From Klebsormidium nitens (lineage: Eukaryota; Plantae; Klebsormidiophyceae), in assembly GCA_000708835.1 (NCBI GenBank), contig DF237166.1, positions 73,870 through 137,869 on the forward strand: a stretch of DNA of 64,000 nt, read 5' to 3'. The position numbers and the translations under genes are program-made. The number at the start of each line of letters is the position of its first letter. The stretch's first letter is position 1. The notes under the pieces were generated by a model that was not told the origin of the DNA, ran no database searches, and saw only the letters and a program-made list of their open reading frames with translations. Of this stretch, positions 17,984 through 63,163 are shown piece after piece.

Positions 17984-18097
17984 TTTGACAGTCTAGAACT
18001 GCCCCCCGCGCCGCTCCTTGTGCGGCGTTATGTAATGGACGCGGTTTGACAGTCTAGAACCGCCCCCCGCGCCGCTCCTTGTGCGGCGTTATGTAAT
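17984..18097 (-). repeat. Two-copy 61-bp-period tandem duplication covering the stop codon of the coiled-coil gene
   Basis: 17984-18036 vs 18045-18097: 53 bp with 1 mismatch. Confidence 0.92.
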
Positions 18098-33800: not shown

Positions 33801-34034
33801 CATCAGCCGGGAAGCTGGCGTTAATCCAGCACAAAAGGCGTTTCATCCGTTGCAACTTGTCAGGAAGCAGTGAGCTGGTCGCAGTGTTGCCTTGGCGGAC
33901 ATAATGGAGTTCTGAGCAAAGAGTGACTTACCAATCTTCACGACAGGGCAGCTCTTCTTGCACTCCTGCCGGCACTTCTTTGGCTTGCACCTGTCAGCGC
34001 TCACAATGGCGATACGCGTCAGCTTATCGGCCAT
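24882..34034 (-). CDS. ABCE1: ABC ATPase ABCE1 / RNase L inhibitor (ribosome recycling factor), 604 aa, 12 exons
   Basis: complement(join(24882..25004,25817..25990,26712..26867,27854..28033,28976..29161,29771..29966,30938..31124,31733..31871,32356..32542,32845..32942,33310..33395,33932..34034)) = 1815 nt, in frame. Fe-S motifs [15 protein letters not shown] and [12 protein letters not shown]; Walker [10 protein letters not shown] and GENGTGKT; two LSGGELQR signatures; DEPS Walker B; EHD switch; C-terminal [14 protein letters not shown]...YYYLDEA. Confidence 0.98.
28004..28555 (-). repeat. Four degenerate intronic copies of the ABCE1 exon-9 acceptor region (branch point, AG, exon start)
   Basis: True site 28004-28068; copies at about 28164-28225, 28282-28316, 28374-28432 and 28503-28555 (cagcaggcccgcctg...gggttagtca). 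Confidence 0.85.
28091..28122 (+). repeat. (GATAGGTT)4 tandem repeat in ABCE1 intron
   Basis: Four exact 8-bp units read directly. Confidence 0.9.
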
Positions 34035-38742: not shown

Positions 38743-40439
38743 CACAGTTTGTTGTTTGAATTTTTCGCTTACATGCTCCAGACCAACTCACAACATAGGC
38801 GATGTCGGGCTTGGCTGTTCCTGTTCGTTGTTACGTCCTAGCCTACAAGCAGCCAATAATTTGTGTTGATAGGATTTTGAAACCAGGACCCGCAGGCTAT
38901 CTGAAGCAGCTCAAAATGCATGCGCGCACGTCTACTTATGAACTATGGCAAGAAGTTGTTCTTGACGAAGCTAAGGTCGTTGTAAGAAGGAAAACGATAC
39001 ATTCTAAGTTCAGTGGCACCTCCGATTCCGAGCTTCCTTTTCCGTTGTCCTGCGTGCACATGGTTGGCGTGACAACGTTTACAAATCGACATGAGGCCAG
39101 TCGGTTGCATGAGCACTTGAAAGGCATTTCAAGTTTGACAGATCATTACAACATCATGCATCATGCTTCTTGACAGCTGTCACGGCAAGATCGACTAAAG
39201 CTAGCGATCTGAGTAAACCAGACGAAAACTATATGATTGAGCTAATTGCTGCTCGATCGCATATGTGGCAATACGCGTTTAGTTCGCTCTCTAGCGAGTA
39301 TCGTACAGATCCACATGGTACTACATAATTTGCCACTGGATTTCCGACGTGATCAAGCATGTATAGGCGGCTATATAGTGTCACTTCCAAGAGCTCGGAT
39401 TGCATCGAGGGGGCATGCACTGCAAACTTATATATAGCCGTCTAGCATATATAAATGCCATATGCAGCTGCATATGGCATTTATATATGCCCTATACCAA
39501 GGATCAACCGGCATCGTTGTATCCGGGCGGCCATCTTCTCTAGGAATGACCATGTGTTAATTCAGACTTATGCGTACGGTAGCTTATATATCAAGATTCC
39601 ACTACGTACTATGTTCTATAAACATCACGTGAATTCTATCGCTTTCTAAAAAGCTCGTCAATGTCAGGCTGCACTCACCATCGAGTAGGTAGGTCACCAG
39701 ATTGGCACAAAGTCACAAAGGAATGAGACGTTGTTTTGTGGCTTAGCAAGTCGCGGAGGGATCCCCTCAGATCTACCTTGATAGCTAGATCAACCGGTGC
39801 CTAGGTCTGTCGATCGGGTGAAAGTCGATCACGCCGATCCATGCCCCGGTAGGGTGGCCGATCGACCGGTGGAAGTAGCGCGGCCCAAAGCGCTTCAGAA
39901 GTTAAGTTAAGACTGCGCCCGGTTCACAACTTACCGGGACAATATTATTGCAATTCCACCGACCAACCTTCCGCCCCATGCACTGCCTAGACTCGGCCGT
40001 GCTGCTCAATGCGCTGCAGCCTGCATGCAAGGTTATATGCGTATATATATCTGATATATCTTATATAGATAGCCTCGCATATAGTAGTCACATGGTTCGA
40101 GACAGCAACGGCGTGCGCTTTGGGCTGAGCTTCCACAAGGAGGTGGCATTTGAGTTATGTAGTACAAAAGCGTAGAATCCATGAGCTGAATGTAGACGTC
40201 GCAGGTGGGGCGCAGATTGACTGCTTCAACGTAGCCAACAGCATTGACTTTGCTTCAAGTACTGCATTTAGGATGCGCTGATTGTGAGTTTCTGTCCACC
40301 ATTTCGCAATTGAACAGTCCAAATCCCTTCTCTGTAGCTGTTAGTTGCGTGCAGCAGCCAGTTCTTCGCTTGACAAAGAATACCAACAAGAAGACTGCAC
40401 AAGATTGAAGTGCTTCTGCTAACACGGTTGTTCAAAAGG

Positions 40440-43400
40440 ATGTCTTCCTACGACCAGGCTGGTGAGTACTCAACACTTGCTCTACTTCAAGACAAGGACT
40501 TGTTCAATGAATGATTAAGAAGCTTTAGCTCCCATTGCAGCATTGGAGGTCTCTGGCAGGACTTACGTGGCAGGTATGAGCCAACAGTCAGCTTCCCCAT
40601 TTCATGCACTTTGAAGTCTCTGTTCAGCAAAACACAGTCTGATAGATAGATTATCAGACACATCTCTGGAAGATTATACATTCTGCTAGTCACTGCACAA
40701 CGCTCATGACTTGCAAATCCTCTTCTCTGCAGATCTGAAGGACATGGAGGCTGTGCATGAACTGGTGAGACACCTTACCAATCTGCTTACTACATGCATG
40801 ATGTTCACACCTTTCACAGCTTCTTCAAGTACAAAGCCATAGAATGCTCCAAACAGCATCTCCACGCAATTCATTCTTGGAAGAGCGCTCTTTGGTGTTC
40901 CATGCCACAATTGATGCTTAAAAGCCAATTATGCAGGGCAGGACAGATAGGAAGAGGCTGATATGAGGACGTGCTTTGCGCAAGACTTCTAGCCTACACC
41001 AAACAATGGACACATTTGGACAGATTTAGACACATTGCCCTTATGTCATCTTTGTCCAAGAAAAGCAAAAAGTCACGACCTGATCTGGAGGTTTTGTATA
41101 GCCCTCCCATGTCTGTTGGGGCGGCAGCTTTCAGTCAAGCATGCACTTTCACCAACCGACACTTGTCTTTTTTCTATGTCCAGGAGCCAATCAGAGTCAA
41201 CGGTTGCGACATTCGGGTCACGACGTCCGGGCTAGTGCTGCCGGACGCCTTGGCTGCAATCTTCCAGCCAGTGGACAACCACATGCAGCTCCTGAGAACA
41301 GCAGTCACAGCCGAGGCCATGGAGAGATGGGGCTACGACGTCAGGAGCGTGAAGCTCGCAAACCCTTACAAGCAGTAAGTATCCAGATGAGGCTTGAATG
41401 GGCCCCGGACCATGCATATTAGCATATGGTCTACAAGGATTTTGGGGCCGTGGCATACGGCATATCGGCCAAAAACTGATTTGGCATCCGGCATATTGGC
41501 ATCTGCAATATGCCAATATGTCTAAGATAGTCTAGTATAACGTGTTTTCTGGCCCTGAATGGCGTACACTTCGATTACGAATGTTCTGACATGTTCTGGC
41601 TTATCTAATCCGTTTATCAAGCTAGGTATGAGCAAACAATAGCAACTATTATTTAGACCGTATACATCATATACCAGCAGGTTTTGTGAGGTTATGTGCT
41701 TTTAAAACGGAAAAGTCGCTTTTGGATTATACTGAAAACTTACACAAAAACGCAAAAAACTTCTCGTGAATGCAAGGCGTATATTAGATGGACCAGCTCG
41801 CTTATGGTTCGCGGTTGAGTAGGCTTCCCCGAGGTCCACAAATTCGGCTGGTACCATACGGGCCAGCCAAACATTACAAGCTCACCAAACGAAGTTTCTC
41901 GCATTTTTGCTATCATAAATGGTGGAATTTGATGTTCTTGTAAGTAGTGATTGAACCTGTTACACTCAGCTGCCTCGAAACAGTAAATCGGCATGAAAAT
42001 TTAGTGTCTGCCGTCGTTTTTGAGCCGCATACGGCCATTTTCAAGTCAAAAAACAAAGATTTAGCATATATGCTGATTGCATATAACATAACCCAAAAAG
42101 AGGCGCTCGGCATATGGCAGAACGGCCAAAAACTCGGCTGGCATATGGCATATTGAAGTCGAAATATGCATGGTCCGGGGCCCACTTGAACACTACAGAT
42201 ATAGTGCCGATAAGTAGACTGGTCACAAGCTGGTGTACAAGGTTTGCAAGGTCTTGGGAGAAGCTTCCGTGAGGCTGTCTTCAAGAGTTTCTTGCCTTTT
42301 GAGAATGGCATGGATCAAGACTGCGAGGTTCACTTGGCGGCAGGTGGTTTGACCATCGGAGGAGCAAGTTAGCACTGTTCAAAAGCTATCTGAAGGAAGG
42401 ACAAAGCAGAGGGCAGATGTCAAATAGTCATGGCTGTACAGCTGGTTAGTGGTACTGACAGCTGTCATTGGTGGCATTAGTTGAGGGCATTGCCAGTCAG
42501 AGGCTGAGCGCCAACTTGCACCGTCGTTTTTCCCTTGTCGACTTCAGCAAATACAATTACGACGCATCAATCTCTTGCGAGGCCATCTCGACAACTTGTG
42601 GAGTCCTTTGGACCTATTGAGAAGCATATGAGCGAAAAGGACTTGGTTTAGGAGCACCACTTAGGAATTCTAAATCAAAAGTTGTTTGCAATCAAAGCGG
42701 CACAGCTGGCAAGTGGCAGAGACAGCTGGCGCGTGAATGGAAGGGGTTGTCTGACAGCTGTCACCTCTGTCCTAAAACTGGTCAGCAGCAGACAGATCTT
42801 TGTACAGCTGGCATCTTTTGATTTAATTCAAACTGGCATATACGGAACCCTTGCAAAGCAACCCTTGCATTCGCATCTTTTTGTGGGGAACGAGCAAGAG
42901 GAACCGTGCTTTCTTCACCCACCTTTGGGCCCAGTCTTGGATATTCTCGCCTTGAGGATGACAAACCCGCACAAACAGAGTTCTTTGTTTTGCAGCCGCA
43001 GTGCGGTACTCCGTTTTCCGCATTTTTACCATCGCAAACTAATTGTTCTTTTATAGAGAACAGGAAAGAAAGTCTTGATAGCTGCAAATGAAATGCAAGC
43101 ACCTGCGGAGAAGCGAGTCCTCTAAATTTACCAGACATTTAAGCTGGAAATTTCGATTTTCTACTTATGTTGGAGTAGGCAGGTCTGTAGCTTCCACGCA
43201 CTCCATCGTTTCCTAGCGCACACGCACGCAGACGAGCCTTGTGAGTGCAGAATGCGAGGAGAAAAGGCCGAAAAATGCGACAAGAGGCGCCACAACTTTC
43301 TCAAGCTCTACTGGCAAAAACTGGAGGATGAGTACAAGCGGATACGGAAGGTAAGAACTACGAGTACACTTGAACTTAACCGTGCGGTTGCGCCTGAGCA

Positions 43401-46400
43401 CTCGTATCTGCACGCTTCTGTTAGGCGCGAGATGCGAAAGCCCCTCATGTTTGACAAACCGGTTGGATACTCGTTGGCCCCAGCTTACACAGGTTTGATC
43501 ATGAAGGTCAAGGAAGCGTGTGTATCTCTTCAGGCACGAGTTTTCTGATAAATTCTTGCATGTGGCACCCGTTCAGCTCTCTCTTTGAGGTCATAGGACC
43601 GATCAATCCGACCAGACACCTTGTTCATCTACATAAAATCTTGATTGGGTCGAGAAGCTCTCGGCTGAAGGTACTCTGGAGCTAGTCGGGTCCGCTTATC
43701 CAACGGGTCCATCGTAACAATCAGATCAATCGCTGACGGCATCCTGAAACGCTTCTCACTTGATGGCCTCAAACACAGTCACTTAGACCAAGTCGCCCCA
43801 CATGTTCGATTGGGCCAGAAGATTCCTCCCAAACCTTGGTGTTCTTCTCTCTTTTGTGACGCACATGGATCGGAGCATAACAGATATGTTAAGGATCGAA
43901 ATATGTTTGATCATGCATACTGTATCAAAACTTCGGCATATAAATACCGATTGGTGTGGGCCGCAAGGTTCCCGTTCTTGGCTGACGTCACACCTCGTTC
44001 CTCCAAGCTCCGACTGGTGAAAACATAGTCGGGTTACATTTTCACCGCTGACGTCATTGCGGAACCCCACAGGCGGCCTTTATGAAGAGGAAGCGCTCCC
44101 GGCCCTACTATCAATGCCGCGACCAGCGCGCCATTCAGATGCCACGTGTCAATTACGGATCCCAAGGGATGGACGGTGGGGACAAGCCGGGAGACTGGGG
44201 GCGACAGTCTGGGAGCGTGAGCGGCGAAACGGCGAAAGAAGAGGACGGAAGAGAGGGAAAGGAGGGTTCTACGCGCCGGTGGGTTTCCGGAAGACGAGCG
44301 GAGCAGAACGGAAGCGGAACCGAGAATCCAAATGGGAACGGGAACGGGAATGGAAACGGCAACGGAAACGGAACCCGGATTGAGAGGGAAGCAGCGGAAC
44401 GGGGGAATGGCAGGGCGGGTGTGGTGACGCCGGAGCCGGAACAAGGGGATGGGCCGCGGAACAACGGAGTGCGCAGCGATGGAAAGGCTGTAAGCTGCGA
44501 GACAAGTGCGAGTGAGGAGGAAGGTTATACGATTCCAGCAGAGTCGCTCAACTCAGAACACTTTCGGACTGGAGTCCAGGAGCTCCTTGCGAGAACAAGA
44601 GATATGAAGGCAAGGAGCGTCGCCGAGAAGGCGGGCAACGGGCACAGCGGCTGGGGCGCGGTCGAGATATTGACGGAGGCGATCGAGCGGGAGCTAAACG
44701 GAGTCGAGAGGGTACTTTCAGTGGCGGTGGAAGGAAAAGTTGGGGACGAAGAAGCGCGAGAAATCGGTCGGCACATGATGAGGGTCCAGAAGCTCAATTC
44801 CTTGGAGAGTTTCCACGAGTTGCTCGCCAGTGAGACGGAAGCCGGCGGAATGGGCGGCGATCGGATTCCGGCGAAAGCCCCGGAGGCGAAACAGCCGGAC
44901 GACTACCTAGAGGGCATCGCGCAACTTTTCGCAGAGAAGGACGCAGAGGAGGCGAGCAAGTCAGCGAACGCAGGCGACAACGATGGGTCCCCAAACGATC
45001 CCGGAAACACGAGCCCCCCGGTGAAGCAGCAGTCGTTCCGCCCAGAGATTGCGGCTCCTTTCGTGGAGCGCTCTCCTAACTTTCCCACGCGCAACACCTC
45101 TGTCGCGGATGGCTCGGACACATGCCAGACCTTGGGGAAGGGCGGCCGCGCAAGCGCAACTACCGGAAAGGAGAACGCTTCGCCGATGCAAAGTCTTAGC
45201 GACAACCAGAGCGGGGAGAAAGGTTTTGGAAGCGGGAGCAACGCCGGATTTTCAGATGAAGGGGAAGGCTCTGAAGCGGAGGATGACTCCGGCCGATCAG
45301 AAAACAGGGCCGGCTACGGCCACCGGTCACGGAACGAGTCCAATGGAAAATGGGAACCTGGATTTGTCCCACTTGTAGCTGGAATCGAGCGACATGCAGT
45401 TGGAGTCATACAGCGGTATAGCAGGGCCTTTGGGAACGCCAGCATAGGTGAGGAAAATCAATGCGAGAGCGAAGCCGTCCAGGGGGGCGGAAGGGGGGCT
45501 AAGTTGTACCCTGCGCCCGGGGAAAGCCTTCCGGGGAGCGTGAGCGTGGGCCAGAAGAAGGGGCCGGGAAGCCTTCGGAGCAGCGTGGGGTCGAGTGGGG
45601 CTGTCAGCCTACAGGGGAGCCTCAGCAGAGCTGTCAATTCACAGAATCCCATCAGCAGGGAGCAGGTGATGCGGTTGGCGGACCCGCTGTTGGCCGTCTT
45701 TGTGGACCTCACCGGCGGGGTAAGTTTTACGAAGCTCGTACATCGTGAACCGTGGTTAGCTGCGTAAATGTCTCTTGGTATGGCAGCTCTGGGAGGAGCG
45801 CGTAAAGAACGTCTCAGCTTGGCTCTAAGATGAGCTTCGAATAACGCGGACGTGCAATTGCGTGGGCGTCCATTTCTGTTGCAGGGGCCGGACATACCTC
45901 GTCAATGTATCGTTTGTCAGAATGGTTGATGGCAGAATGGTAAAGAAGTCTTAATTGCGCGATTCCTGCACCGTCCAACCGTTAATCTTTAGACAGCCCA
46001 AAGCCTGAGGAGACGTTGAGCATCTGTTGCATCACTGCCGAGCAATTTAGAACGAGGGTCTTGTTTCCCTGCAGGACCGAGCAGCGGCCATGCGTATGTT
46101 TCATTGGGCGATCGAGCTTTCGTCTCTGCCGCTGCATCTGCGGTGGGTTTACATTCTGCAAATTGAAGTGCTAGGCTTCAAAGAGACCAGGAATTGTCCC
46201 GCAAATCCATTCGAGCGTACGTGTGGAAGGCAGCCCAGATAAAGTTTGCATCCGTTGTATCGGCCAGCCTTCGAGCTCTGCATCTACCTACATCCATTGA
46301 TACTTGCATCGACCCTGATCCCATTCTAAACGCGCTCGACGGCAGCTGCAAACGCTGCTGCCAACGTGGCGCAAAGTAGCAACCTGACTGGTCACATCGA

Positions 46401-47860
46401 CTGCTGACGGGGCCTTTTGACCTGCTAGTACGCATTCCTCGCTAGCAGGTCAAGAGTGTTCGGCAATCAGTGCTGAGTGACGAGGCGCACCTTCCGTGCA
46501 TCGGCAGTTGACTTTGGCCGCAGAATCGATCTCAGGCAGCTGCAACAAAGCTTGCTCGTTTCCTTTGTTCGACCTCTAAAAGACCGTTTGCCACCTGTTA
46601 GGTACTGATTCTCCTTCAGACGGGCTCTCAAACTCGTAATGTATCCTCCATATACCAACCTCTTACTGAAACCAGCATGGGGTTTCCAGGTCTCAGATCA
46701 TTGGGCCAGAGCATACGATCGAGGCCAACTTTGATGAGGTCTGCGGCACGCTCTGCACCGCGCTGGCGGAATCGCCGCCGGAAGCGGAACCGATGCTGAT
46801 GGCGACGGTGGCGGAGGCGGCCGCGAGAGCGGAGATGCCGAACGCGTGGCGGCCGCGATTACCCCTCCTGGCCAAGTCCCTCATCGACGTGGACCAAAAA
46901 CAGCGCTACAAGCGCTGCCCGGACGACCTGTTTCATCTCATGAAGAGGATCGGACAACTAGAGTGAGTCAGATTCGTGAAAGTGGGTCGACATCTTGTTT
47001 TCGGATGCACGAAGCTGCTAATCTTGCGTGCCGGTTCGCTTGCGACGACTCTCTTTTTTGGGTTCCGGGCGTTGAGGGCAAAGGCTGCCAGGACGCAAAC
47101 CCACTGTCTGTAACAAGGATAAGATTTTCAACGGCTTGTCGAATGAATGCTCAGCCTTATGTGTAGGCAATTATACGTGATGTTCCTATTCCGCTTATCG
47201 AGCCAATTCTTGAATCAGTGTACCTTTACCCGCAATTGCAGCAGAACAGCATGATTTCTGCGGCTGATTGTCACCTTGGAGATGCACCTGCTCTAAATTT
47301 GAAACGTACTGTAGTATCCCATAGTCACGCAGACTCGACCTTTCCCGGAAACTTCTACGAAAAGTGGCTTGTCTACTGTTTAGCATGCCGTGACGTGCTC
47401 TTGACGGCACATGTTGCCCCTATACGGGCCAGATTGCCCTTGCGGTTGATTTAGAGTTTACTTACCTTCACGAGATCGAATCAGATATTAATCGCACCTA
47501 ACATGCTACTCGCAAACCCGTGTACACCTGTGCCGCATCTGACGTTTCTTCCACCCCTGCAGGACCGACCAGCCATGCCATCCAAGGCTCGCAAAGAAGC
47601 CGCCCTTTGAGGGCCCCGGGCACTTTACGTGGGGCCAGACGATCCTTCGCTATCTGGGGATGAAGTTCGCCAACGTTCTTTGGTGCCTGTCTAGATCCCG
47701 GAGAGATGCGGACCTGGAGCCGGGCAGTTTGGACAGGACGACAGACTCCGAGTTCATCCGGGCCGCAAACGAGCTGTGCTATGACGGCGGCAATGTCAAG
47801 GTGTTCGGGTACGTGGAGCGGCTTCGGCAGCAGCCTTTTGCTTTTGCGGAAATGACTTAA
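40440..47860 (+). CDS. Uncharacterised protein, paralog A of convergent pair
   Basis: Exons 40440..40461, 40541..40573, 40733..40764, 41184..41374, (one unresolved junction), 43232 or 43251..43350, 44073..45719, 46075..46142, 46690..46962 and 47563..47860. Phases are consistent and homology to paralog B is clear. The 5' end is uncertain. Confidence 0.8.
41399..42184. mobile_element. 786-bp non-autonomous TIR element (MITE-like), TG..CA termini, 6-bp TSD
   Basis: Perfect 22-bp TIR tgggccccggaccatgcatatt (41399-41420) / aatatgcatggtccggggccca (42163-42184). Direct repeat cttgaa at 41393-41398 and 42185-42190. Subterminal ggcata(t)ggca and ggccaaaaact repeats. Confidence 0.9.
44329..44375 (+). 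repeat. Coding hexamer repeat encoding (NG)n
   Basis: NPNGNGNGNGNGNGT within the large exon of paralog A. Confidence 0.8.
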
Positions 47861-50308
47861 GATTATTCTGGGGAGTGACTGGTGATGCTTTTGAGACTGA
47901 GATACTCTTGGGTTTGGGGAGAGACTAAATCAGTTGTGGGCAATGAGCTGAAGTGTAATCGACAGAATGGGCTCAAACAATTGGGGGCTTTTGGCTGGAC
48001 TTAGAAGCAGAAAGGTGACTCTGAAGACTTGCGAAGGCGTAAGTGATGCATTATTGCTTCAAATTGGACCGACGCTACGGGGTAGACAGTGAAGCGACTT
48101 AGAATGAGAATAGAGTACGTGCTGTTTATGAATCAAGTTGAAGGAGGATTTGTTAGACGAGCAGGTCGGACGATAGTGGTTACGGTGGCCTTTGAAAAAC
48201 GCAGTTGCCGCTAGCTGAGAAGGGTACAGGCTGCTGCGCCAGAGAATCATTGATTGGCTTCCTTGAGGGGGCTCGGTGTTTCAACGTGCATGCTGAGCTC
48301 ATCATCCTTGAAAACCGCAACTATGCCGTGTAAGTTGATACGTAGTACTAGTTTCGGATTGCCTTGGCAGCATTCCGTTTTACGTAAGTCGGCGGCGGCC
48401 CTGAGCTACTGAGCATGGGTCGATTGAACACCTGGCGTTACAAGATCTGGACGCCTTCACTAAATCTATGTCACGTGTATCCAGATATGCGTATGAACTT
48501 GAATCCTGGCGCGCTACGTTGAAATGTGTGCCCTGCACGTGCACATGCTGCACCTAGACAAAATTGTTCTTACTCATTGAGTTGGTGACACGGCATGGAA
48601 GGTATTCCCGAGAGTCGCGGACGGACATCAACCATGTGCGTCAGGACGCTGATCGTGCATACAGACCGCATGTGATACTCTATACATGTGGGACTCAGCA
48701 TGAGCCACAGTGTAAAGCAGTTCAATAAATCTCACCATAAGTTGAAGGCAGGACCAGCACGCCCTATAATTTCAATGAGGACATTACCCAGCACATGATA
48801 TATATCATGCAAGGGCAAGTTTAGATGTAAGATTGAACATGCGCATGCCGTGGCGCGCTTTGCAATCGCGGTGGCACGTCATTGTCGAACCGCAACTTTC
48901 GTGTTCGTTAAGCCGCGGGCCCAATGAGTAGTTGGTCGACAGCACAGCCCGCCGCGCTGCCATAAAGCCTGATGATCTCACGCCTGTTCCTGATCATGCA
49001 GCCTGGGCCGCCTGCCATCTTTCGATTTTAACGGCCTCTGACTATGGCAGCTTTGCTGATCTCGAATATATGTGACCGAATCTACTAAAGCTAGAGCCAT
49101 CAATAACGTGGACGTTGTCGGCCCGTCATGCTGAGTTGGGTCGATAAATTCACCTGCGTTCAGTGTTGGAAAGGCAAGGTGGGTCAAAAACGGAATGTGA
49201 CCGGACTATAGACAAACATGATGATCCGATCCTTAATGCTCCTATGTTTCATTATAAAACCCATCTGCTAGTCCAAAACAACCTGCCAGGGTATATACCT
49301 ACATATCGGATGTCACATACGTATACTTAGCTTGCACAGTAAATGATCTCGCGATTCACCACGAGTGCCCCGGTACCCCGGAAGAAAATATCAGGTTTTA
49401 ATGATGCATGCAGGGCCACCCCCAGTTATAAAACATCCGTAAAGCCTACTATAAGAAGGGTACAACAACATGCCCTGAACATGTACGTGCCTTTCATGCA
49501 CGTTATAAGCTAGCTTGGCCCGCACGTATACATCGGCGGCAGGGAGGCTAGCTGTTGACAAAATGCCACGACTCGGACGATCAATATGAGCAAGACCCGG
49601 CTTTGACCGGACTCAGGCTCATATGGCCTCCATCGCTCATGGTTGGGCCTCGCGGACATCATACCGATAGAATCAATGGCAGCTAGCCGGGCATGATGGT
49701 TCGGTGGGCCATCCTTGTCGCGTCACTTCATGTGCTGGCAGGTTGGCCCGCTCATTTCAGGCTCGTGATAAATTGGACTTGGAGCATCACACGCAATACT
49801 GGCCCCGGATCCGCATGAATGATCATGCAACTTTCCAACAGTAAGCAGTGCTTACATACTCTCTGATTGGAGAGTCACAATGTTGCAGATGATTACTGCA
49901 CGGGAGTACATCTAGCTTGTTGCGGTGCTGCCATTTACGCGTTCTCTTTTCTATGTCTATTTCAATGGGCAATTGTCGAGACCAGCATAGCAAAGACGGC
50001 CGCAATCTGCAACATCAGAATCTTCATTGACTGTTGGTAACTATATCGAACAGGATTCAGCTGTTGCCCCTGCTTTTTGACTTTGAGGAGTCACCAATCG
50101 TCTCCGTTTATCCGCCAACCTTTTAATATTTGATCTCGTCGTTAGTCCAACACCGCGCTTGCATGATGTCATATACAAACGGGCTAATGCCCCAGCCTGA
50201 CGCCCTACGAACAACATACGAGATACACAAAACTCACGGTTATGAACTCATGACCCGTAGCCTAGGGGCTTCTCTGCCGGCAAGCTCGTAACTCAATCGC
50301 TATCTCCT

Positions 50309-53300
50309 TCAAGCCCAGGTTGGTTCCATATCGGAATCCTCGAACTTCTGCATCCGAAGAAAGTCCACGTAGTCCGAGAACACGCCGTGGTTGGCCGTGT
50401 CCTCCAGCCGCACAACCGCCGCGTGCAGCGTGGGGCTCTGCCTCCGGCTCAGGCTGCTCTGCACCTCAGGCTTCACGTCGGCCGGCTTCAGTTTGAAGTA
50501 CAGCCGGTACATGAACGACGGGAGCCGTCTTCCCTCCAGCAGGTTTCGCGCCCACGTCTCGCCCCAAGTAAAGTATTCCGACAAGTAGAACGGCTCGGCC
50601 TTCAGCAACAGCTCGAGGTAACGGTGGTGCGCGCTGCGTGAAACAGTGATGAGGCGATCAGATCTTGGTGAGCCCTGCGGCGAAGGGCACTAACGTCCAG
50701 CGGCCGAAAAGTAATCTGTGGAATAGGCTTTTATGTGACGGCATCGCGAATGAGAGTCGACCGAATGTTTTAGTTTTACAAAGCGAGCGTTGGCGAGTGC
50801 TTTTGCACCGGGCGAGAGTCAACCAAAGTCCACGTTTAACAGCCGCCGCACAGGACCACGTGGCATCGCGGCGACCAAAGAGACTAATTCCAGTGTGTTT
50901 GGTCGCCGAAGCCACGTGGGCGCACATCCTTTTTCAACGTCTCAGGAAAGTCTTCGTGGAACAAAACGAGTTCTAGCAGACATGGGAAATTACACTCGCT
51001 TCCAGACAACCAGAGTACGTTTGCGCACCGCAGCCCATCCGCCACCGCTGATAGAATGAGGAGCAGCAAAAAGCAGACGACACACGGCAAGCAATCTGAC
51101 AGTGCATCTTTTGAAACTACAACAATCTATCTTCAAAGGGTTCCAACTAGACTGGAGGGTTGGACTAGACTTGAGCTCAGTGCTATCCAGTTCTTCGACA
51201 GTGCACACGAGCATGGCACCCATACTTGGAAAAAGACCAGGAAGCCGCAATGCAGACTAAGCAGTTCGCAATCCAGCGGGTGGATAGAAGAAACAGTGCA
51301 ACCAACTCACTGCAGGTGGCGCACGTTGCGGGAGCCGTGGAACAGGGTGTCGGGGCATCTGACGTACTGCCCCTTCGAGTTCCGGTCGAAGCACGACTTG
51401 GCCGTGTCGGAGAAGTCCCGGCGCCAGTCGTTCGGCATGAACGACTCCTTGGCCGCCTCCGCCACCAACCGCAGCAGCCTCTTCTTGGCCGTCGGCTCCG
51501 ACTCCGCGAGCAACATGCATATGTCGTTGCACACGGTGTTGAATGTGTCGCCGCACTCCTTGACGGTGTAGAGACGGGGGCCGAGGAACTCGCGGGACCT
51601 GGAGACGAATCGGGTCGCAAAGCTGGTTAGCCAAACCCTGACTAGATTTGGTTAGTGACTAGGCACAGGATGTTGTAGTTTAGAAAAGCAGCAGCTGATC
51701 AGTAACCTCCGGTGATCGGAGCAAGCAAGGTGGAGCTAGAGGCGGAAAGCTTGGTACAGAAAGTGGTTAGGAAACCAGAAAACAGAACCGGATTGTAGCA
51801 TTACTAGAAGGCGATTCTGCTTACAGAACGGACCGGAACAGAATTGTGCGGAGCTCCTGCACTGTTTCGCTTTATGGAAGCGCGCGTCTTCATTGGAAAC
51901 CTTTGCCTAGTTTGCGAAAGACCTCTGGAGAGGAGGGCTTCGCTTTATCAGTCGTCGATGTTCGGCGAGCTCGAGGTTTGCCTGCTTGAAATCGAGTGCT
52001 ATGAGCGGTGACACCTGTCGAGAAGATAGTGGCCGCCACGTGGCGGCTGCAGAGAACACGCCACGTGGCACCAGCCGGAAGGGCGTAGTGTGACATCATC
52101 TCTTAGTAACGAAAGGTTTGGTTTGAAACGGGCAACATGAGAGCACTACAAGTACGTTCCCTGAAAGGCCCCGGAGAAATTTTGAGAAACGTTTTGAAAA
52201 CTCAGGCCAGTGACGTCTTGACCAGAAGACCGATATTCCAAGAACTCAGCGCCAGCTCCACGCAGATGAAAGTTGGCTCGGAGACGGCATCCCATTACTT
52301 CATTTCTGAAGATCCACCAAGCAACTGAGTTGAGGAGCTTCGACTCAGCCAGCCTATGCATTTCAAGGTTCTGAAACTTGATAAGACAATCCATAGAACT
52401 TCTCCGACTCGCTCTTGCAAAGAAATCGCAGACTCGAAAGAACGTGAATCAGTCAGTGCGGCACCTCCTTTGATTCAGCCTTCTAATTCATCAGAAAGAC
52501 CAAAATACATATCCCAACGCCTTTTGCGACTAAAGTTTGTGCCAAGACTAAAGGGTACTCACCACGGGTCTAGCGGCACGCGCAGTCCCTCGTGAAACTC
52601 CCGCCCCAACTGCTCCGTCTTCTCCTTGTCCTGCAAGGGTGCACAGAGCCAGTAAAGAGATTTGGCAACGAACAATATGCCTAAGATGGAGCCGGGTTGC
52701 TGAACTAGCTTAAACCTGACACCCTGGACCTTTACAATTCTCTTTTTGGAAAGCTCGAAATGGAAACAATTATTCCAAAACTTCGTCGGCAGCTCTCGTT
52801 CCGTTTCGGAGAGGGCGGCAGCTCTTCTTCGGATATCAGGGCTTACTCGCGCTGCGTGCAAACTTCAGTGAATGTCACCGATAAAAGTTCGGTAAACCCC
52901 TCCGAAAAGGAAGTTTTGCAGAAAAGAGAGTTCGTTGCATCTGCAGAACGCTAAGCTAGATGGGCGGTCGTTCGTGTTTTACAAGCGCACCAAGACTGCG
53001 GTCGTGACCTCAGCGACCGGAACTTCGGTTCTGAATGAGCAACCATGAGTTGTGCGTAAACCAGGCAGTCACCAATCCATCATCGGTCTCAATCGACAAC
53101 GATTACGTCATCAGTTGGCTAAGAGAGAAGGCCAATCAAATCACCATAGAAACTACAGACCCTGTCAGCTCATTTCCTTCCTCTGCGGGCGCTCCCGCAC
53201 AGCCGTAATGCAGATTTGCCCTTCCGCCTCTATACTGGATCAAACAGAACACCGAAAGCGAAGCTTGGAACGGGTCCGCAAAACTCACACCCGCCGCATA

Positions 53301-56300
53301 GAAGTATCCGTGGGCTCCCTCGCTCCGCGCCCACAGCTTCGACTGCTCCCAGGTCGGCGGCGTCATGGGGCTGAGCAGCCCACTCGACCCGGTCGCCCCG
53401 CTCCCTGGCTGGCCGCTCCCCGGTGCTGCCTCCAAAAGGTCCCGGTCAGTGGAGGCGCTCCCCGGGGTTGGCGCAATGCGCACGGGCGGCAGTGCCATGA
53501 GCGCGCGGTCGCCGATCGCCCGGGCAGCGTCAAGCCCCGGCCGCTGTGCCTCGTTCCCCAGCGCCACGGGCAGGGCGTCCACCGCGCGGTCGTTGCTCCC
53601 CCGGGCAGCGTGATCACCCAAGCTTTTTGCCCCGGCCTTCCCTGGCGCCCGGGGTTCTAGAACGAGCGCCCGGTTTCCGTTCGCTCGCGCGGCCTCATCT
53701 CCCAATGTCCGTTCACCGGGGTTCCCTGGCTCGTTCTCGGTCTGCCCAACCCCGACCGGTATTGCCAGCCGGTTGCTCACCGTCTCGCCGGCTGCCCTCG
53801 CCTTTTCTCCTCCAATTTCCCCGGACTTAATTGTTCCCATCGCTTTCTTCCCGGCCGCTTTGGTTGCCTCTCCCGTCCCAGCCAAAGCGGCTTCCCCGGT
53901 TGCTTCCTTGCCCAGTCGGCCCCGGGGCATTTCTCCCCTCTTCAGCGGCCCGCTCTTTCCAGCCCCTCCTCCTTGCGTCTTTTTCCTCGCGCTGTCCTTC
54001 GCTCCACCTGCCGAAGCTTTCAGTGCCGGAATCTTAACGAGGGCCCGGTTCGTCAGCTTGATGCCAGTAGTTCTCTTCACCGGCTGCTTTCCTGGGGCCC
54101 CATTTCCAGCCTGCTTCGTCTTCGGCTTGACCGCAACCACCTCCCCGGGCATCGCCGAACCAGGTCCTCCTACAGCCGGCTGTTCCCCGGGAGCTCCCTT
54201 CGAGCCGGCCTTCCTCCCGGGCGCATCTTTCCCGGTCCCCGCTGCCATCTCCCCACCCGCTTCCTGGCCGCCACGTGTCAGCGTCTGCTTCGTCCTCCCG
54301 GGCATGCCTCCGGTTTTGTCCTTCACCAGCGCGGCGTCCTCAGTCTGTGACTCTCTCGTCTCCGTCGGCGCGTCGTCCGTTGCTGACGTCGCCATCCTCA
54401 CCCCTTCCTTGTCTGTCATTGCTCTCGCCCTCGCCTCTCCGAGCACTTCTCCGCCCGTCCCCCCAGTCAGCTTTGCGGGCGCTTCCCTGGGGCGCTCCCC
54501 TCCGTCGCTGCCCAGCTCTTGCGCGCACTCGGTCTCTTCCCCCCCTGCGCACATGGCCGGACTGCCGCCGGCTTCTTTCCCCGCCCAAAATTCAGGCTCC
54601 GGCACACGAGCAAAGAAACTCGATGCTTTCCGCATCATCTGCTCCCATTCGCCGTTCCATTCCGCCCGTTGCTGATTCAGCGCCAGCAGTTGCCTCCAGA
54701 AGCCGGCACCAGGCTTGACCTCCGGATCCGATGCTGTTCCGCTTGGGGGGTGCGTCAAGGACTGCCTGCGGCTGCCCCTCTTCGCAGAATCAGAACCGGG
54801 GGGTCGCGGGGTGGTTTTCTGGACAAGGGGAGACGACTTGTTCGGAGACGTTCCCGCGTGGAAACCCCCCGGCGTGACCGGACCGCCGTCGCTTCCCGTC
54901 TTCCGGCCGTCACTGCCATCTTGCGCCGGGGAGGCGTTCTCTTTCCCGGCCCCCATGCTAGAGCGCCGCGACTTCCGGGGGGGTGTTGAGTTCGACATTC
55001 CGGGGAGAAACGGGGCCCCGGCGTCGGAGTTGAAGTCACGGTGTGCGAACGGGTCGGCGCTGTCCCCGCTCCACGGGTCACGATCCCCGGCGCTCTCCTC
55101 GCTGTCGCCGCTTTTCAGAGACATTTGGGGGGGGACAGTCCCTGACGGCATGCTGCCAGGGGGAGAGGGGGGGGACTGTTCGACGGCTGGGGTTAGCGAA
55201 AGCCGACTCAGCACGTCCGCTTGCGTCACGTCTGAGCCTGCCGCCGCTGCCTCTGGCGCCTGACCCCGCTCATCTTGCACGTCACCCCCCTGGCTGTTGA
55301 CGTCAGCAACTGCGTCTCCCCCACTAACAGCTGCGCACCGAACGTCGCGCTCCGCCCCGCCGCCGTCTGCGTCTTCTTCGTCACCGTCTCCGGCTCCCGT
55401 CTCCTGCTCGTTGCTCGGGCTTTTGGCCTCAATATCCGTCTCCAGTACCGTGCTTGCATCGCCCTCGTCCGGCTCAGCGCCAACGTCGTTCAGACTCTGC
55501 TCCCCAGACGCATTCTCCAGGCCGTCTGCCCCCTCAAACCCTCCGTCGGACTCAGTGGGGATCTCCCCCTCCTCGAGCTCCGAGCTTCCGGAGTCCCTCC
55601 TGCCTTCCTGCCCTTCTGGTGCGCCCTTTCCCTCGTCCGCACCGCTTGCGGGGCCCCCCTGATGGCCCACACCGTCCATGAGTGCGTTCTTGCTCCCCCC
55701 GCCCATGGCGGTGCCACCCGATCCCGTCTTCTCAGCTGTCGGCGCATCTTTCTATGGCTCGTTTTGCAGCTTCACGTTGGCAGGCTCCAGTGTTGTGGTC
55801 TTGTCATCCATGCGCAGCTTCTTGGCGGGGGGCTTGTCCGTTGAGGGGTGGGTGGGCCTCGGACGCTTGGAGTCGGTGGGGGTGGCCTGTCAGAAGCAAC
55901 CAGTGACGTCAGCAGGAGACATTCAGGAAGTGCGCGCTCTTTTGATCACTGATGATTTAGGCGCACACCTTGGTTGTTCAGCGATGCCCTCAGTGAACAC
56001 AATCCTCAGGCCTCCAACTCTCACAATTATCAGTCACACCGCCTGACCTCACGACTCGAGACAACAATCGATTTCGAGCTCTTACGCTTCTTCCCCAACG
56101 CGCACGTGCCTAACAGCGAGCAGTGACGTCGTCATCCCTGAAAGTACGTCTTGCCTCCGCTTTTCGAACCCTTGCCCTGTGGAAATTTCGGGTGATCTGA
56201 ATACTGGCACCAGAGTTGACAGACAATCACGCCCTGTACTTTCTGAACCCCATGCAAGAGTCTTCTCAGTCGAGTTTAAGCAGAGACGTCAGCTCCAGTC

Positions 56301-59171
56301 GTGAAATTTTCAGCCTGTAACATGCAATGGCACTCCAAAAGTCCGCCCGATTTCAAACCGAGGCTGTGAAGACAGAGGGCCTCGTTTTCGCCAGCTGACA
56401 TGTCGAACTCCACGGCACCAGATAGCAAAAAGACACAAACCGTTGGCACCAACCGTTGCTAGCACATGCAATTCTACCGCTCATATCGTTGTCCCTTTCT
56501 AGCAATATCAAAACTACTCAGAAGCACTACGTCCCTGATCAATAACCAGCACACTATAAGTGACCACAGTAGCTTACTCATCAATTGTCTCATCTTACCT
56601 CAACGTTGCGACTCTGAAGCAAGTCTGAAGCTGTGCGTTCAAGAACTTAGCCCCAAGTCTAAGTGACTTTCACCCTTCCCAAGTGAAATACATGAGATGC
56701 AATGCCATTCACCGGCACTGGTTCTGACTCTTACCACGATGCGAGTGTGCTCAGCCTCCACCCAGGCCCAGTACCGGCTGAGGAAGGTCCCCCTCCTCTC
56801 GTCGGCCCTACCCTTCACCATGCACAAGCATGCGGATACACCAGTTTGCTTTGGTTGATGCACGTGCGCCAAGTAGTGGTGCACCGCTTCAATGCTGCAA
56901 ATGCGCGCCGGCCTGCAGAACAATCTCAAGGTTTCTTGATATTTGTGATTGTTCAAACCCCGCTCACCTGCTCAACGTGAATGACGCAGTCAGCGGTCTG
57001 ACATATGCGGTCAACGAACAAGAAGTGTATTCAGACCCTCCCTTTGCCAAGACAGGTTCTCCCAACGCCCTTTGCTGAAGACAACATCTTGACAATCCTA
57101 ATCAGAGTCCCCATCCTCATTTCCAGGTCAGAGTCTTGAACGGAGGAAGGTCAAACTCTACATACTCAGCTCTGACAAGGCAAAGTCACGCCACCACGTT
57201 GCTTTAAAATGCTGCAGCTAATTGCTGCCAGCTGTCCTGGAACATTGCTTGGAGGTTCTCTAGAAGGATCTCCTCAGAAATGCACATCCCGGTCGCGCCA
57301 GCTGTCAGATTTACTTGACGGCAGTTATTGCCGCATGCCACTTTTGCCGCTCTATGCACCGTAGCTGTCTCTCTTGCACCTTCATTTCTCTCCAACTGTC
57401 AAGCTGTTGCCTCCCTGGCCAGTACCAACAGCAGATCAGAAAAGAACAGCAGGTTGAGCATGATCAGACAAAGAGAATCTTTTCGTTCCGTCTCCCTGAA
57501 TCTCAGCAGCTGCCCTTAAGGTGCCAGCTGGTCATCGACCTGTGCGCCAGCTGTCAGCGTGCCTCTCCAGTCGATGCAACAACGACTTGTCAAAGGCTAT
57601 CTTTATTCGTACCAGCCCTTAGGATTGACTAAGATCGCTCTCTTTCTTGAGAGCTCAGAAAAGGGAGTTTGTTTGAAGTATGTAGAGCTGCTTTGTTCTC
57701 CGACATGCATTGTACCATTGATGGCAAGAGCTTCTCAGGTCAGGTAGGTCAGGCTTCGCAAAGGTCACGCTCTCAATCAACAAAATCCTCTACTTTTAAT
57801 CATGCTCCAGACATCCTAACCAGTCAGTAAGCAGGTTTGACTTTTAAGCAGCTTTCTACTCACTGATTCTTGAGTGAAGCAAGCTTGAGCCATGGAACTG
57901 TATGGCCCGCTTCCTCCAGGAATTTTGCTGCCGCTGCAGTTCTCTGCTGAAGGTAGCGAATCGGCTCGTCGGGCATCTCGAAGGTTGCGGCAACCACGTC
58001 CTTCAGGTCCAAGCCGGCCCTGGCAACCTTGATCTCCCACGAACTCACGGTGATCGTTTCCTGCACAAGCAATAAATTGTCAGGTTTTATTCAGGTTCTT
58101 TTCTTGAAGACAGCAAGTCTCTGCTTCAGCGCCATCTGTCTAGGCTATCGAAAGCAACAAATCTCTGCACCAAGGCTGCTAGTCTAAAGAGGCTGCCCCG
58201 ACAAACCACGCATGCAGGCTATCTTTCAGATGCTGGGGTGACCCGCACGCCAGCTGTCATCAAGGCAACTCGTCTAGTCAGCCAAGATCCCATCACCATC
58301 TACCCCATCTGTTCAGGATGCTTTAACAATTGGATTGTGTCCAGGAAGCACTATCAAGCTATCTCGTGCCGGGACCACATAAAAGTCTTTAAGCCAAAGG
58401 CCTTTGATTCCACGTTTCTCATTTCTACGATGATGCAGTTCTTGTGTATCATTGAAGGCATCCATTGAATGGGTCCATGATTACTTACCTCGTACTCCTC
58501 TCCCAGATCCACTTCTTCCGGCCCTGTAAACAGCAAAAAGATCTGCGGTCGAAACCAGAGCATATGATACACTATGAAGTCTGTCTATCTCTTTGTGTAA
58601 TTGTTCTTGTCGAAAGAACTCTTAAACATCGTCCTGCAAAAATACCCAAACAATCGCTCTCAGAGGTTCATATCGGTCCATCATCAAAGTCTCTCAGGAA
58701 ATCCTCCCTTACCTGCTATCAGAGGGTTCACCACCAGCCCTGACATGCAGAATTCACGTTCCAGATGTATGGAATGCTGTGAATATCTTGATTCATTAAG
58801 CCTAAAAGTGGTCAAATCTCTCAAGAATCCTGCGTTCTCACCTTCCTCTTCCACAGCTGCCATTATCCTCACACCGTCTGCCGATCCAGCTGCGCAGCCT
58901 GCAGGAGTACTGAACTGCGACGAAGTCCTTAGTACCTGCCAGCGCTCACATCACCAGAGCGGTCTCCTGAATGCACCTATCTGTACTTTTTTGTCTTCAT
59001 TAAATGTCTCAGGACGGTTCTATGAAACACCTTCTTAGCAGCTTGCGAGACGAAGCGGCCACCATTGGCACGACCATCTCCACCAGAAGTAGCCTGAACA
59101 GCGCCACAAATGGCGCAGTACGTATGGCTATAACTTGGAAAAGGGATTCTCTTGTGAAGCGCGTTTGCCAT
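50309..59171 (-). CDS. Uncharacterised protein, paralog B of convergent pair (one in-frame TAG at 55752-55754)
   Basis: Exons (minus) about 59171..59031, 58914..58713, 58523..58489, 58060..57864, (unresolved junction), 56848..56735, 55886..53289, 52630..52563, 51598..51311 and 50633..50309. GT-AG sites and phases match paralog A. The 5' end is uncertain. Confidence 0.78.
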
Positions 59172-60394: not shown

Positions 60395-61138
60395 CTAGCG
60401 TTTCCGAAAATCCTTCCTGCCCTTCTTCTGTTTCTTGCCACTATTGCTACCTTCCTGAGACTCCTCAGTACAGTCTGCCGCAATATGGCCCGGCTTCCCG
60501 CAGTTGTGGCAGAGGCGGTTCGCCATGTTGTGAGCATACTGCTCATCGTTCAGGGCAGCAGACAGCCGCGCCTTCGACGTCTTCCCGGTGCCACTCCCGG
60601 ACGCCTTACGTTTGGCAGCCACCGACTTGGCGGTCTGGGCAGGTTTACGCTTCAAGCGTTCCTCAATCATTGGCCACTGCAGAGTAGCATACTGCATGAG
60701 AGCACGCAGAGCATTCCAACGAGTACCGGCGGGAGACGTTCTGCACAACTCCTTCAAATCCACTTGGAGACCAGACCGATACTTCTCGATCTTAATCTGC
60801 TCGTCTGTAATCTCAGCGGCAAGGTTAGTAACAGCTTGCTCGAAAGCAACGTTGTACTCATCCACACTTGTGAAGCCCTGCTTGAGATTATTCCAGGTGT
60901 CCCAATAAGACTGAATGGGGGTTCGCAGACCATAGGTCCACGAGTCATGACCAGTGTCCCTGAAAAACTGACGAGCATTCGGAGGATACACTCCTGGGTT
61001 TGCACGCTGATACACAGCATACTGGGAAGACCAATAAGACCTTGGCTTCCCATTCAGATACGAAGACGCCAGACGCAAATACTCAGCGTTAGGCGTGTTC
61101 CGAAGATACTCTTCGATCTGATCATTGAACCACTCCAA
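60395..61138 (-). pseudogene. gag: Retrotransposon gag (capsid plus CCHC zinc knuckle) fragment
   Basis: Retrotrans_gag-like motif and CX2CX4HX4C knuckle; in-frame stop and frameshift upstream. Confidence 0.9.
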
Positions 61139-62502: not shown

Positions 62503-63163
62503 NNNNNNNNNNNNNNNNNNNNNNNNNNNNNNNNNNNNNNNNNNNNNNNNNNNNNNNNNNNNNNNNNNNNNNNNNNNNNNNNNNNNNNNNNNNNNNNNNN
62601 NNNNNNNNNNNNNNNNNNNNNNNNNNNNNNNNNNNNNNNNNNNNNNNNNNNNNNNNNNNNNNNNNNNNNNNNNNNNNNNNNNNNNNNNNNNNNNNNNNNN
62701 NNNNNNNNNNNNNNNNNNNNNNNNNNNNNNNNNNNNNNNNNNNNNNNNNNNNNNNNNNNNNNNNNNNNNNNNNNNNNNNNNNNNNNNNNNNNNNNNNNNN
62801 NNNNNNNNNNNNNNNNNNNNNNNNNNNNNNNNNNNNNNNNNNNNNNNNNNNNNNNNNNNNNNNNNNNNNNNNNNNNNNNNNNNNNNNNNNNNNNNNNNNN
62901 NNNNNNNNNNNNNNNNNNNNNNNNNNNNNNNNNNNNNNNNNNNNNNNNNNNNNNNNNNNNNNNNNNNNNNNNNNNNNNNNNNNNNNNNNNNNNNNNNNNN
63001 NNNNNNNNNNNNNNNNNNNNNNNNNNNNNNNNNNNNNNNNNNNNNNNNNNNNNNNNNNNNNNNNNNNNNNNNNNNNNNNNNNNNNNNNNNNNNNNNNNNN
63101 NNNNNNNNNNNNNNNNNNNNNNNNNNNNNNNNNNNNNNNNNNNNNNNNNNNNNNNNNNNNNNN
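62503..63163. other. Assembly gap (661 N)
   Basis: Run of N. Confidence 0.99.

Follow-up and report, generated by a model that had tools for sequence, protein, structure and literature searches.

What kind of protein is encoded by two convergent genes that match no known family, and how are the two related to each other? This question is raised by a 64,000-nt stretch of contig DF237166.1 (positions 73,870 to 137,869; hereafter the window) of Klebsormidium nitens, a freshwater and soil green alga among the early-diverging streptophytes, for which NCBI lists three hypothetical proteins at the locus: 188 amino acids (aa; KFL_002170190), 1080 aa (KFL_002170180, GAQ85024.1) and, on the opposite strand, 876 aa. 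Comparison of the predicted exons shows that the two genes, A and B, arose long ago from a single gene of 8 exons by inverted tandem duplication. Each predicted protein is shown to comprise a folded N-terminal domain, a patch resembling a nuclear localisation signal (NLS), a disordered tether of 550-870 aa and a folded C-terminal domain.

Both gene models consist of eight exons with canonical GT-AG splice sites throughout. Gene A (+ strand, 40440-47860) has an open frame of 900 aa and corresponds to the 876-aa NCBI call, which is 24 aa shorter. Gene B (- strand, 58863-50309) has 1236 codons including one internal TAG (codon 189), and the 188-aa and 1080-aa proteins, annotated by NCBI as separate hypothetical proteins, are its two halves. 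Over the 23 kb compared, the window is 100% identical to DF237166.1. For the spans of NCBI gene calls, window position equals 64001 minus the L001 position. Exons were joined only for frame and phase checks in local scripts; searches and folds took single exons or pieces of the NCBI proteins P0001 (1080 aa) and P0003 (188 aa), leaving out the joined gene A protein and a read-through of the stop in B (X in local comparisons). The exons are as follows, where the ortholog is that of B on the public contig L002, described below.

A exon 1, 40440..40461, + strand: start ATG at 40440, 22 nt, phase 1; the NCBI gene call spans 40440-47860.
A exon 2, 40733..40764, + strand: 32 nt, predicted from splice signals and fit to the layout of B.
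A exon 3, 41184..41374, + strand: encodes the N-terminal domain's first half, with a beta-hairpin and two helices predicted; 24/60 identical to B exon 3.
A exon 4, 43179..43350, + strand: C-x5-H-x4-H-x-H...C-x-C (43186-43248) and D-x-RR-x2-FL-x2-YW helix; 22/51 identical to B.
A exon 5, 44073..45719, + strand: 549 open codons, disordered spacer; basic patch KRKRSR at 44085-44102.
A exon 6, 46075..46142, + strand: 68 nt; size and phase as in B, sequence different.
A exon 7, 46690..46962, + strand: core of the C-terminal domain, with KRIGQL in place of the R-N-x-x-H motif.
A exon 8, 47563..47860, + strand: ends at stop TAA; 33/88 identical to B exon 8.
B exon 1, 58842..58863, - strand: ATG at 58863, 22 nt, phase 1; start of NCBI KFL_002170190.
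B exon 2, 58489..58523, - strand: 35 nt.
B exon 3, 57864..58060, - strand: counterpart of A exon 3.
B exon 4, 56735..56912, - strand: Cys/His cluster at 56899-56822.
B exon 5, 53289..55886, - strand: 866 codons, disordered; bipartite-NLS-like KRPR-x11-KKLR at 55868-55812; donor at 53289 matched in L002.
B in-frame TAG, 55752..55754, - strand: in exon 5, codon 189, 44 codons into the exon.
B in-frame ATG, 55704..55706, - strand: 16 codons past the TAG, context ACCGCC-ATG-G; start of NCBI KFL_002170180.
B exon 6, 52563..52630, - strand: 68 nt, likewise 68 nt in the ortholog.
B exon 7, 51311..51598, - strand: 288 nt, as in the ortholog; Y-x11-R-N-x2-H-x-H, resembling the KEN domain of IRE1 and RNase L, begins at 51366.
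B exon 8, 50309..50633, - strand: 325 nt, as in the ortholog; ends at stop TGA.

The relationship between the genes is carried by four exon pairs. In local alignments against 2000 shuffles, none of which reached the real score, exon 7 (38/89 identical, z=36.3), exon 4 (22/51, z=19.2), exon 3 (24/60, z=15.7) and exon 8 (33/88, z=14.6) stand far above chance, while the exon 5 pair is marginal (z 2.5) and the 68-nt exons of A and B lack sequence similarity (z=1.8). These four pairs cover two domains, one N-terminal (~125 aa) and one C-terminal (~230 aa), on either side of the disordered spacer, whose residues are 66-69% disorder-promoting and which opens with a basic patch in both genes. Intron phases (1,0,2,0,0,2,2) agree at 7/7 positions, for which the assumed phase frequencies give a chance expectation of about 1 in 1000. 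Synonymous sites between A and B are at or near saturation, hence the duplication is regarded as old.

Much of what an original prediction for this stretch had proposed from the letters alone is thereby borne out: two convergent genes that align exon by exon, an exact count of 35/77 ungapped identities in the penultimate exons, a preceding exon of 68 nt in both, a disordered spacer (549 and 866 codons) with an NLS-like start, and an old inverted duplication. The agreement in intron phases proved wider than claimed. Homology in the C-terminal part stood, and it also takes in two regions that had been omitted, namely exon 3 and the opening half of exon 4. The statement that the genes are unrecognisable at the DNA level did not wholly hold, as exon 7 gives a 74-nt DNA match (76%, E 1e-4). 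The start apparently assumed for B at 59171 gives way to the ATG at 58863 as most likely, because first exons of 22 and 35 nt mirror those of A (22 and 32 nt) and because this start reproduces the 188-aa NCBI protein. An upstream ATG with a short open frame at 59030-59171 (- strand) could be an upstream exon or upstream open reading frame of B. In intron 5 of A, 45885-45937 (+ strand) may be a small alternative exon, with a cag acceptor and a GTAAAG donor, outside the present model.

The pair had also been taken for two intact genes, which is not supported as stated, given the TAG at 55754-55752 of B in this assembly and a frameshifted and stopped A-like copy on L002. Comparison with its paralog shows KFL_002170190 and KFL_002170180 to be one ancestral gene split by this TAG, located after the NLS-like patch and before an ATG in good context. 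Use of the TAG site as an alternative splice acceptor would be in frame; this reading is weak, with pyrimidines at 5/14 positions versus 8-10/14 at the other scored acceptors of B. The C-terminal exons of B are undecayed, so the stop would be recent, an assembly error or bypassed. At the other end of exon 5, the NCBI model reads ~50 codons into intron 5 and is contradicted by the donor of the ortholog. Among RNA contigs from four RNA-type runs none aligned to B, a result that says little, as no control gene was aligned alongside; two RNA-type runs contain 6% of the words of the A 3' region, a word match and not an alignment to A.

Independent evidence comes from a second genome. A two-sequence profile of exon 7, searched against 1.84 billion representative proteins, returned only B and a fragment of 85 aa belonging to a public assembly. 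The contig that encodes the fragment, L002 (7.6 kb), carries an ortholog of B with 64-66% identity over exons 7-8. Its exon sizes (68/288/325 nt), splice positions and exon 5 end donor are those of B, and the contig is independent support for the predicted 3' junctions. The ratio of nonsynonymous to synonymous divergence (dN/dS) between B and the ortholog is 0.27 (bootstrap 0.17-0.43; Nei-Gojobori, 224 codons), in keeping with the purifying selection proposed earlier, and the 3' exons of B have diverged from A no further than the ortholog has. Intron-level DNA similarity of ~67-70% suggests that L002 derives from a close relative. Positions 53254-53288, just inside intron 5 of B, are conserved in L002 (874-909) within a 72% DNA match, and long parts of introns 5-7 are conserved likewise. 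On its opposite strand, L002 holds a remnant of an A-like exon 5, with DNA matches as strong as E 5e-15, that is disrupted by a 1-nt deletion and a stop; clear A exons 6-8 were not found within the 7.6 kb. The A copy on L002 is decayed and the covered part of B, which stops short of the position of the TAG, is intact. As ortholog and remnant lie on opposite strands of one contig, the tail-to-tail layout is older than the split of the lineages. Within the parts covered, a different copy is apparently damaged in each lineage, and the copies look partly redundant: B stopped and A open in K. nitens, A decayed and B intact on L002.

The family looks confined, so far, to Klebsormidium-like algae. 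With exons and pieces of the NCBI proteins as queries, Pfam, PHROGs, NCBIfam, PADLOC and PDB sequences gave no match, in line with the unrecognised family originally proposed; Rfam gave none, no relative was found in viral, metagenome, prokaryote, phage and plasmid collections, and no paper on these genes was found in the literature. GDNF and OrgA matches fell below the cut-off and were rejected. Three word-based searches returned only K. nitens proteins or nothing; their targets were limited to 0.55-1.75x the query length, which excluded any full-length distant relative of the N-terminal domain from the outset. For this domain no distant kin were found with a short, length-limited query, nor in collections not centred on eukaryotes, by which its range is poorly tested. 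Being real, selected and without a counterpart in any library tried, both domains are candidates for new domain families.

The N-terminal domain (exons 3-4) has C90, H96, H101, H103, C113 and C115 (P0003 numbering) in common between A and B, a conservation that is suggestive only, as it involves two sequences at 42% identity. Its predicted order of strands (E) and helices (H) is E-E-H-H-E-E-H-H, from an AlphaFold model on a 3-5-row alignment that is too poor to use (predicted local distance difference test score 42). This is the order of KilA-N/Bro-N, and KilA-N and APSES belong to the KilA-N clan of DNA-binding domains. In a viral fold search, with the Bro/KilA idea stated beforehand, a baculovirus Bro protein ranked 2 (E 0.35, template modelling (TM) score 0.23, 134 aligned columns), KilA 33 and Bro-1 48, all non-significant, as was a Rha cluster over residues 1-129 in the Atlas (TM 0.36). 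Comparisons by hhalign with Bro-N (131 sequences), AntA (37) and Rha (33) stayed at noise level, as did those of the families with each other, so that the controls failed; the exception, a global AntA alignment (1/100 shuffles as high, probability 0.7%), is subject to the same failure of positive controls. The domain is like the KilA-N clan (Bro-N PF02498, AntA PF08346, Rha PF09669) in size, N-terminal position, predicted element order and weak fold-search hints, with no significant sequence, profile or structure match, and differs from it in the Cys/His cluster and the long disordered tether.

For the C-terminal domain, Y-x2-C-P-x2-L-F-H, F-x-W, VF and LR-x-Q-x-F are common to A, B and the ortholog. 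An EQ-x3-WA-like motif that closes exon 5 may mark the true start of the domain, ~25 residues earlier; its match is significant between B, the ortholog and, by way of the ortholog, the A remnant, whereas A itself gives no significant match. The C-terminal fold was made without this part. The model, again from 3-5 rows, is mostly helical and too poor to use. In IRE1, the catalytic residues are Y892, R905, N906 and H910 (PMC9472280), and the HEPN motif is R-x4-6-H with a polar residue after the Arg (PMC3710099). Residues Y955, R967, N968 and H971/H973 of B resemble the IRE1 set (Y-R spacing 12 vs 13; His at +4/+6 vs +5), and the pattern, chosen post hoc, occurs in 0.6% of shuffles. By eye, and as a lead only, a DW before and a P-x5-YF after also line up with IRE1 sequences. 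An R-x4-6-H-type motif is present in B and, by way of a second Arg, in the ortholog, but not in A; R-[NDH]-x3-5-H is found in 26% of shuffles. The likeness to the KEN of IRE1 and RNase L (HEPN superfamily) consists of a C-terminal domain that is helical and roughly of the expected size, and of the Tyr, Arg-Asn and His of B at near-IRE1 spacing. In contrast, A and B have no membrane segment, no profile match and no kinase domain in the exons scanned, an IRE1/RNase L-type kinase fusion being absent there, and the motif, which is missing in A, has changed in the ortholog. A KEN ancestry may be considered, with membership unproven.

Taken together, A and B are duplicates restricted to one lineage; they may be remotely linked to known folds but belong to none of the families tested. 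As a tentative reading, they would encode a regulator that works in the nucleus, with one end that binds DNA, is KilA-N/Bro-N-like and is stabilised by zinc, and with a helical other end that is KEN/HEPN-like but degenerate. Entry into the nucleus, as the original prediction had it, stays plausible and is probable given the basic patches. There is close to an even chance that the N-terminal domain is a KilA-N/Bro-N-type winged beta-hairpin/helix module with an added Cys/His zinc site, which would anchor the protein on DNA, and the tether would give the helical C-terminal domain access to RNA or protein partners nearby. Descent of this C-terminal domain from a KEN/HEPN RNase is somewhat more doubtful; it would probably be mostly non-catalytic, a binder.

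Several results weigh against this regulator. KilA-N-clan matches are absent in Pfam and PHROGs, as are KEN/HEPN profile matches in Pfam, NCBIfam, PADLOC and PDB sequences (filtered sequence-versus-profile searches); a fold search with the C-terminal model, itself too poor, found no KEN/HEPN fold; and the IRE1 set is not conserved across members, with Ala for Asn in the ortholog and KRIGQL in A. The blank sequence and structure libraries, and the fact that the residues common to the three C-terminal sequences differ from the KEN catalytic set, would also fit a nuclear scaffold or regulator, restricted to this lineage and under selection, with two domains of new families that act by protein-protein contacts, the KilA-N/Bro-N and KEN resemblance being chance. 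This alternative is possible, if tentative as well; the weak Bro/KilA/Rha fold hints, obtained after the idea was stated, and the KEN-like spacing in B, uncommon by chance, argue against it.

That B might be a KEN/HEPN endoribonuclease, active although without a kinase and serving as an effector of defence or RNA decay, with A as its inactive regulatory partner, in the manner of RNase/pseudo-RNase pairs, is unlikely. R-N-x3-H...H in B and R-H-x3-H in B and the ortholog fit the HEPN R-x4-6-H (PMC3710099) and A is without the motif, yet the Asn is replaced by Ala in the ortholog, the general pattern is frequent in shuffles, and neither profiles (Pfam, PADLOC) nor fold lend support. Still less probable is the bolder version in which such an RNase is tethered to a virus-type KilA-N/Bro-N DNA-binding domain for nuclear, DNA-targeted RNA-cutting surveillance, with an inactive paralog and B possibly made as two polypeptides by stop and restart. 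Domestication of a giant-virus or transposon gene (Bro/KilA- or Mutator-type) that gained introns and was then duplicated is also unlikely: the Bro/KilA fold hints and a Mutator-like cluster in the ESM Atlas (feature score 0.84) point that way, but the latter, the sole sign of a Mutator-like (MULE) transposase in the face of no Pfam match, lies below 0.9, a level often reached by shuffled proteins, and seven conserved introns, an ordinary neighbour (ABCE1), the lack of relatives in the viral, metagenome, prokaryote, phage and plasmid collections and the absence of inverted repeats bracketing A or B in 39000-60000 oppose it. The C-terminal metal-binding module of the original prediction, using C-x3-C and C-P-D-x-L-F-H, is very improbable: C-P-x2-L-F-H is kept in 3/3 sequences, with a His-rich stretch after it in B and the ortholog, but both cysteines of the supposedly invariant C-x3-C are replaced in the ortholog (VANDIF), so that the site fails and Y-x2-C-P-x2-L-F-H alone is left common to all three, and A lacks most downstream histidines. 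Just as improbable is that A and B have by now fallen silent or begun to decay, their conservation being a record of past selection, given that, despite the TAG in B, the decayed A copy on L002 and the four runs without an aligned RNA contig for B, A is open over 900 codons in spite of large intron insertions, the 3' exons of B have kept a dN/dS of 0.27 and a distance from A no greater than the ortholog's, and words of the A 3' region occur, unaligned, in two RNA-type runs.

Comparison of the paralogs mends a gene model that had been split in two. Were the KilA-N-like and KEN-like assignments true, the proteins would target an RNase to DNA in a manner not yet described, and KEN domains would no longer be limited to kinase fusions. 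The impact is modest, because the family comprises three sequences and a remnant from seemingly one algal genus, with its function only guessed; the confinement to Klebsormidium-like algae lowers its reach.

The surroundings hold further genes and inserted elements. An ABCE1/RLI1 ('RNase L inhibitor') gene lies ~6 kb upstream of A (29000-34034, - strand; Fer4_RLI E 1e-13, ABC_tran E 1e-8), a proximity to a KEN-like candidate that is probably coincidental. Long coiled-coil-like open frames of 611 and 318 aa, with sub-threshold Pfam matches only, occupy 18057-20556 (- strand), with a 20-N gap between them and further sequence. At 60398-61138 (- strand), 1.5 kb upstream of B, a long terminal repeat (LTR) retrotransposon gag with zinc knuckle is found (Retrotrans_gag E 2e-5, zf-CCHC E 2e-7), adjoined by an assembly gap at 62503-63163. 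A perfect 46-nt palindrome is located at 39445-39490, ~950 nt upstream of the start of A. Intron 3 of A contains one inserted element:

Insertion resembling a miniature inverted-repeat transposable element (MITE), 41399..42184, no strand assigned: perfect 22-nt terminal inverted repeats, flanking 6-nt direct repeat CTTGAA.

This element also has an internal 47-nt subterminal repeat. CAGCTGTCA/TGACAGCTG words recur in clusters in introns of A and B (42400-42800, 57200-57600 and 58200-58280), and a 32-nt inverted match joins 42702-42733 and 57294-57325.

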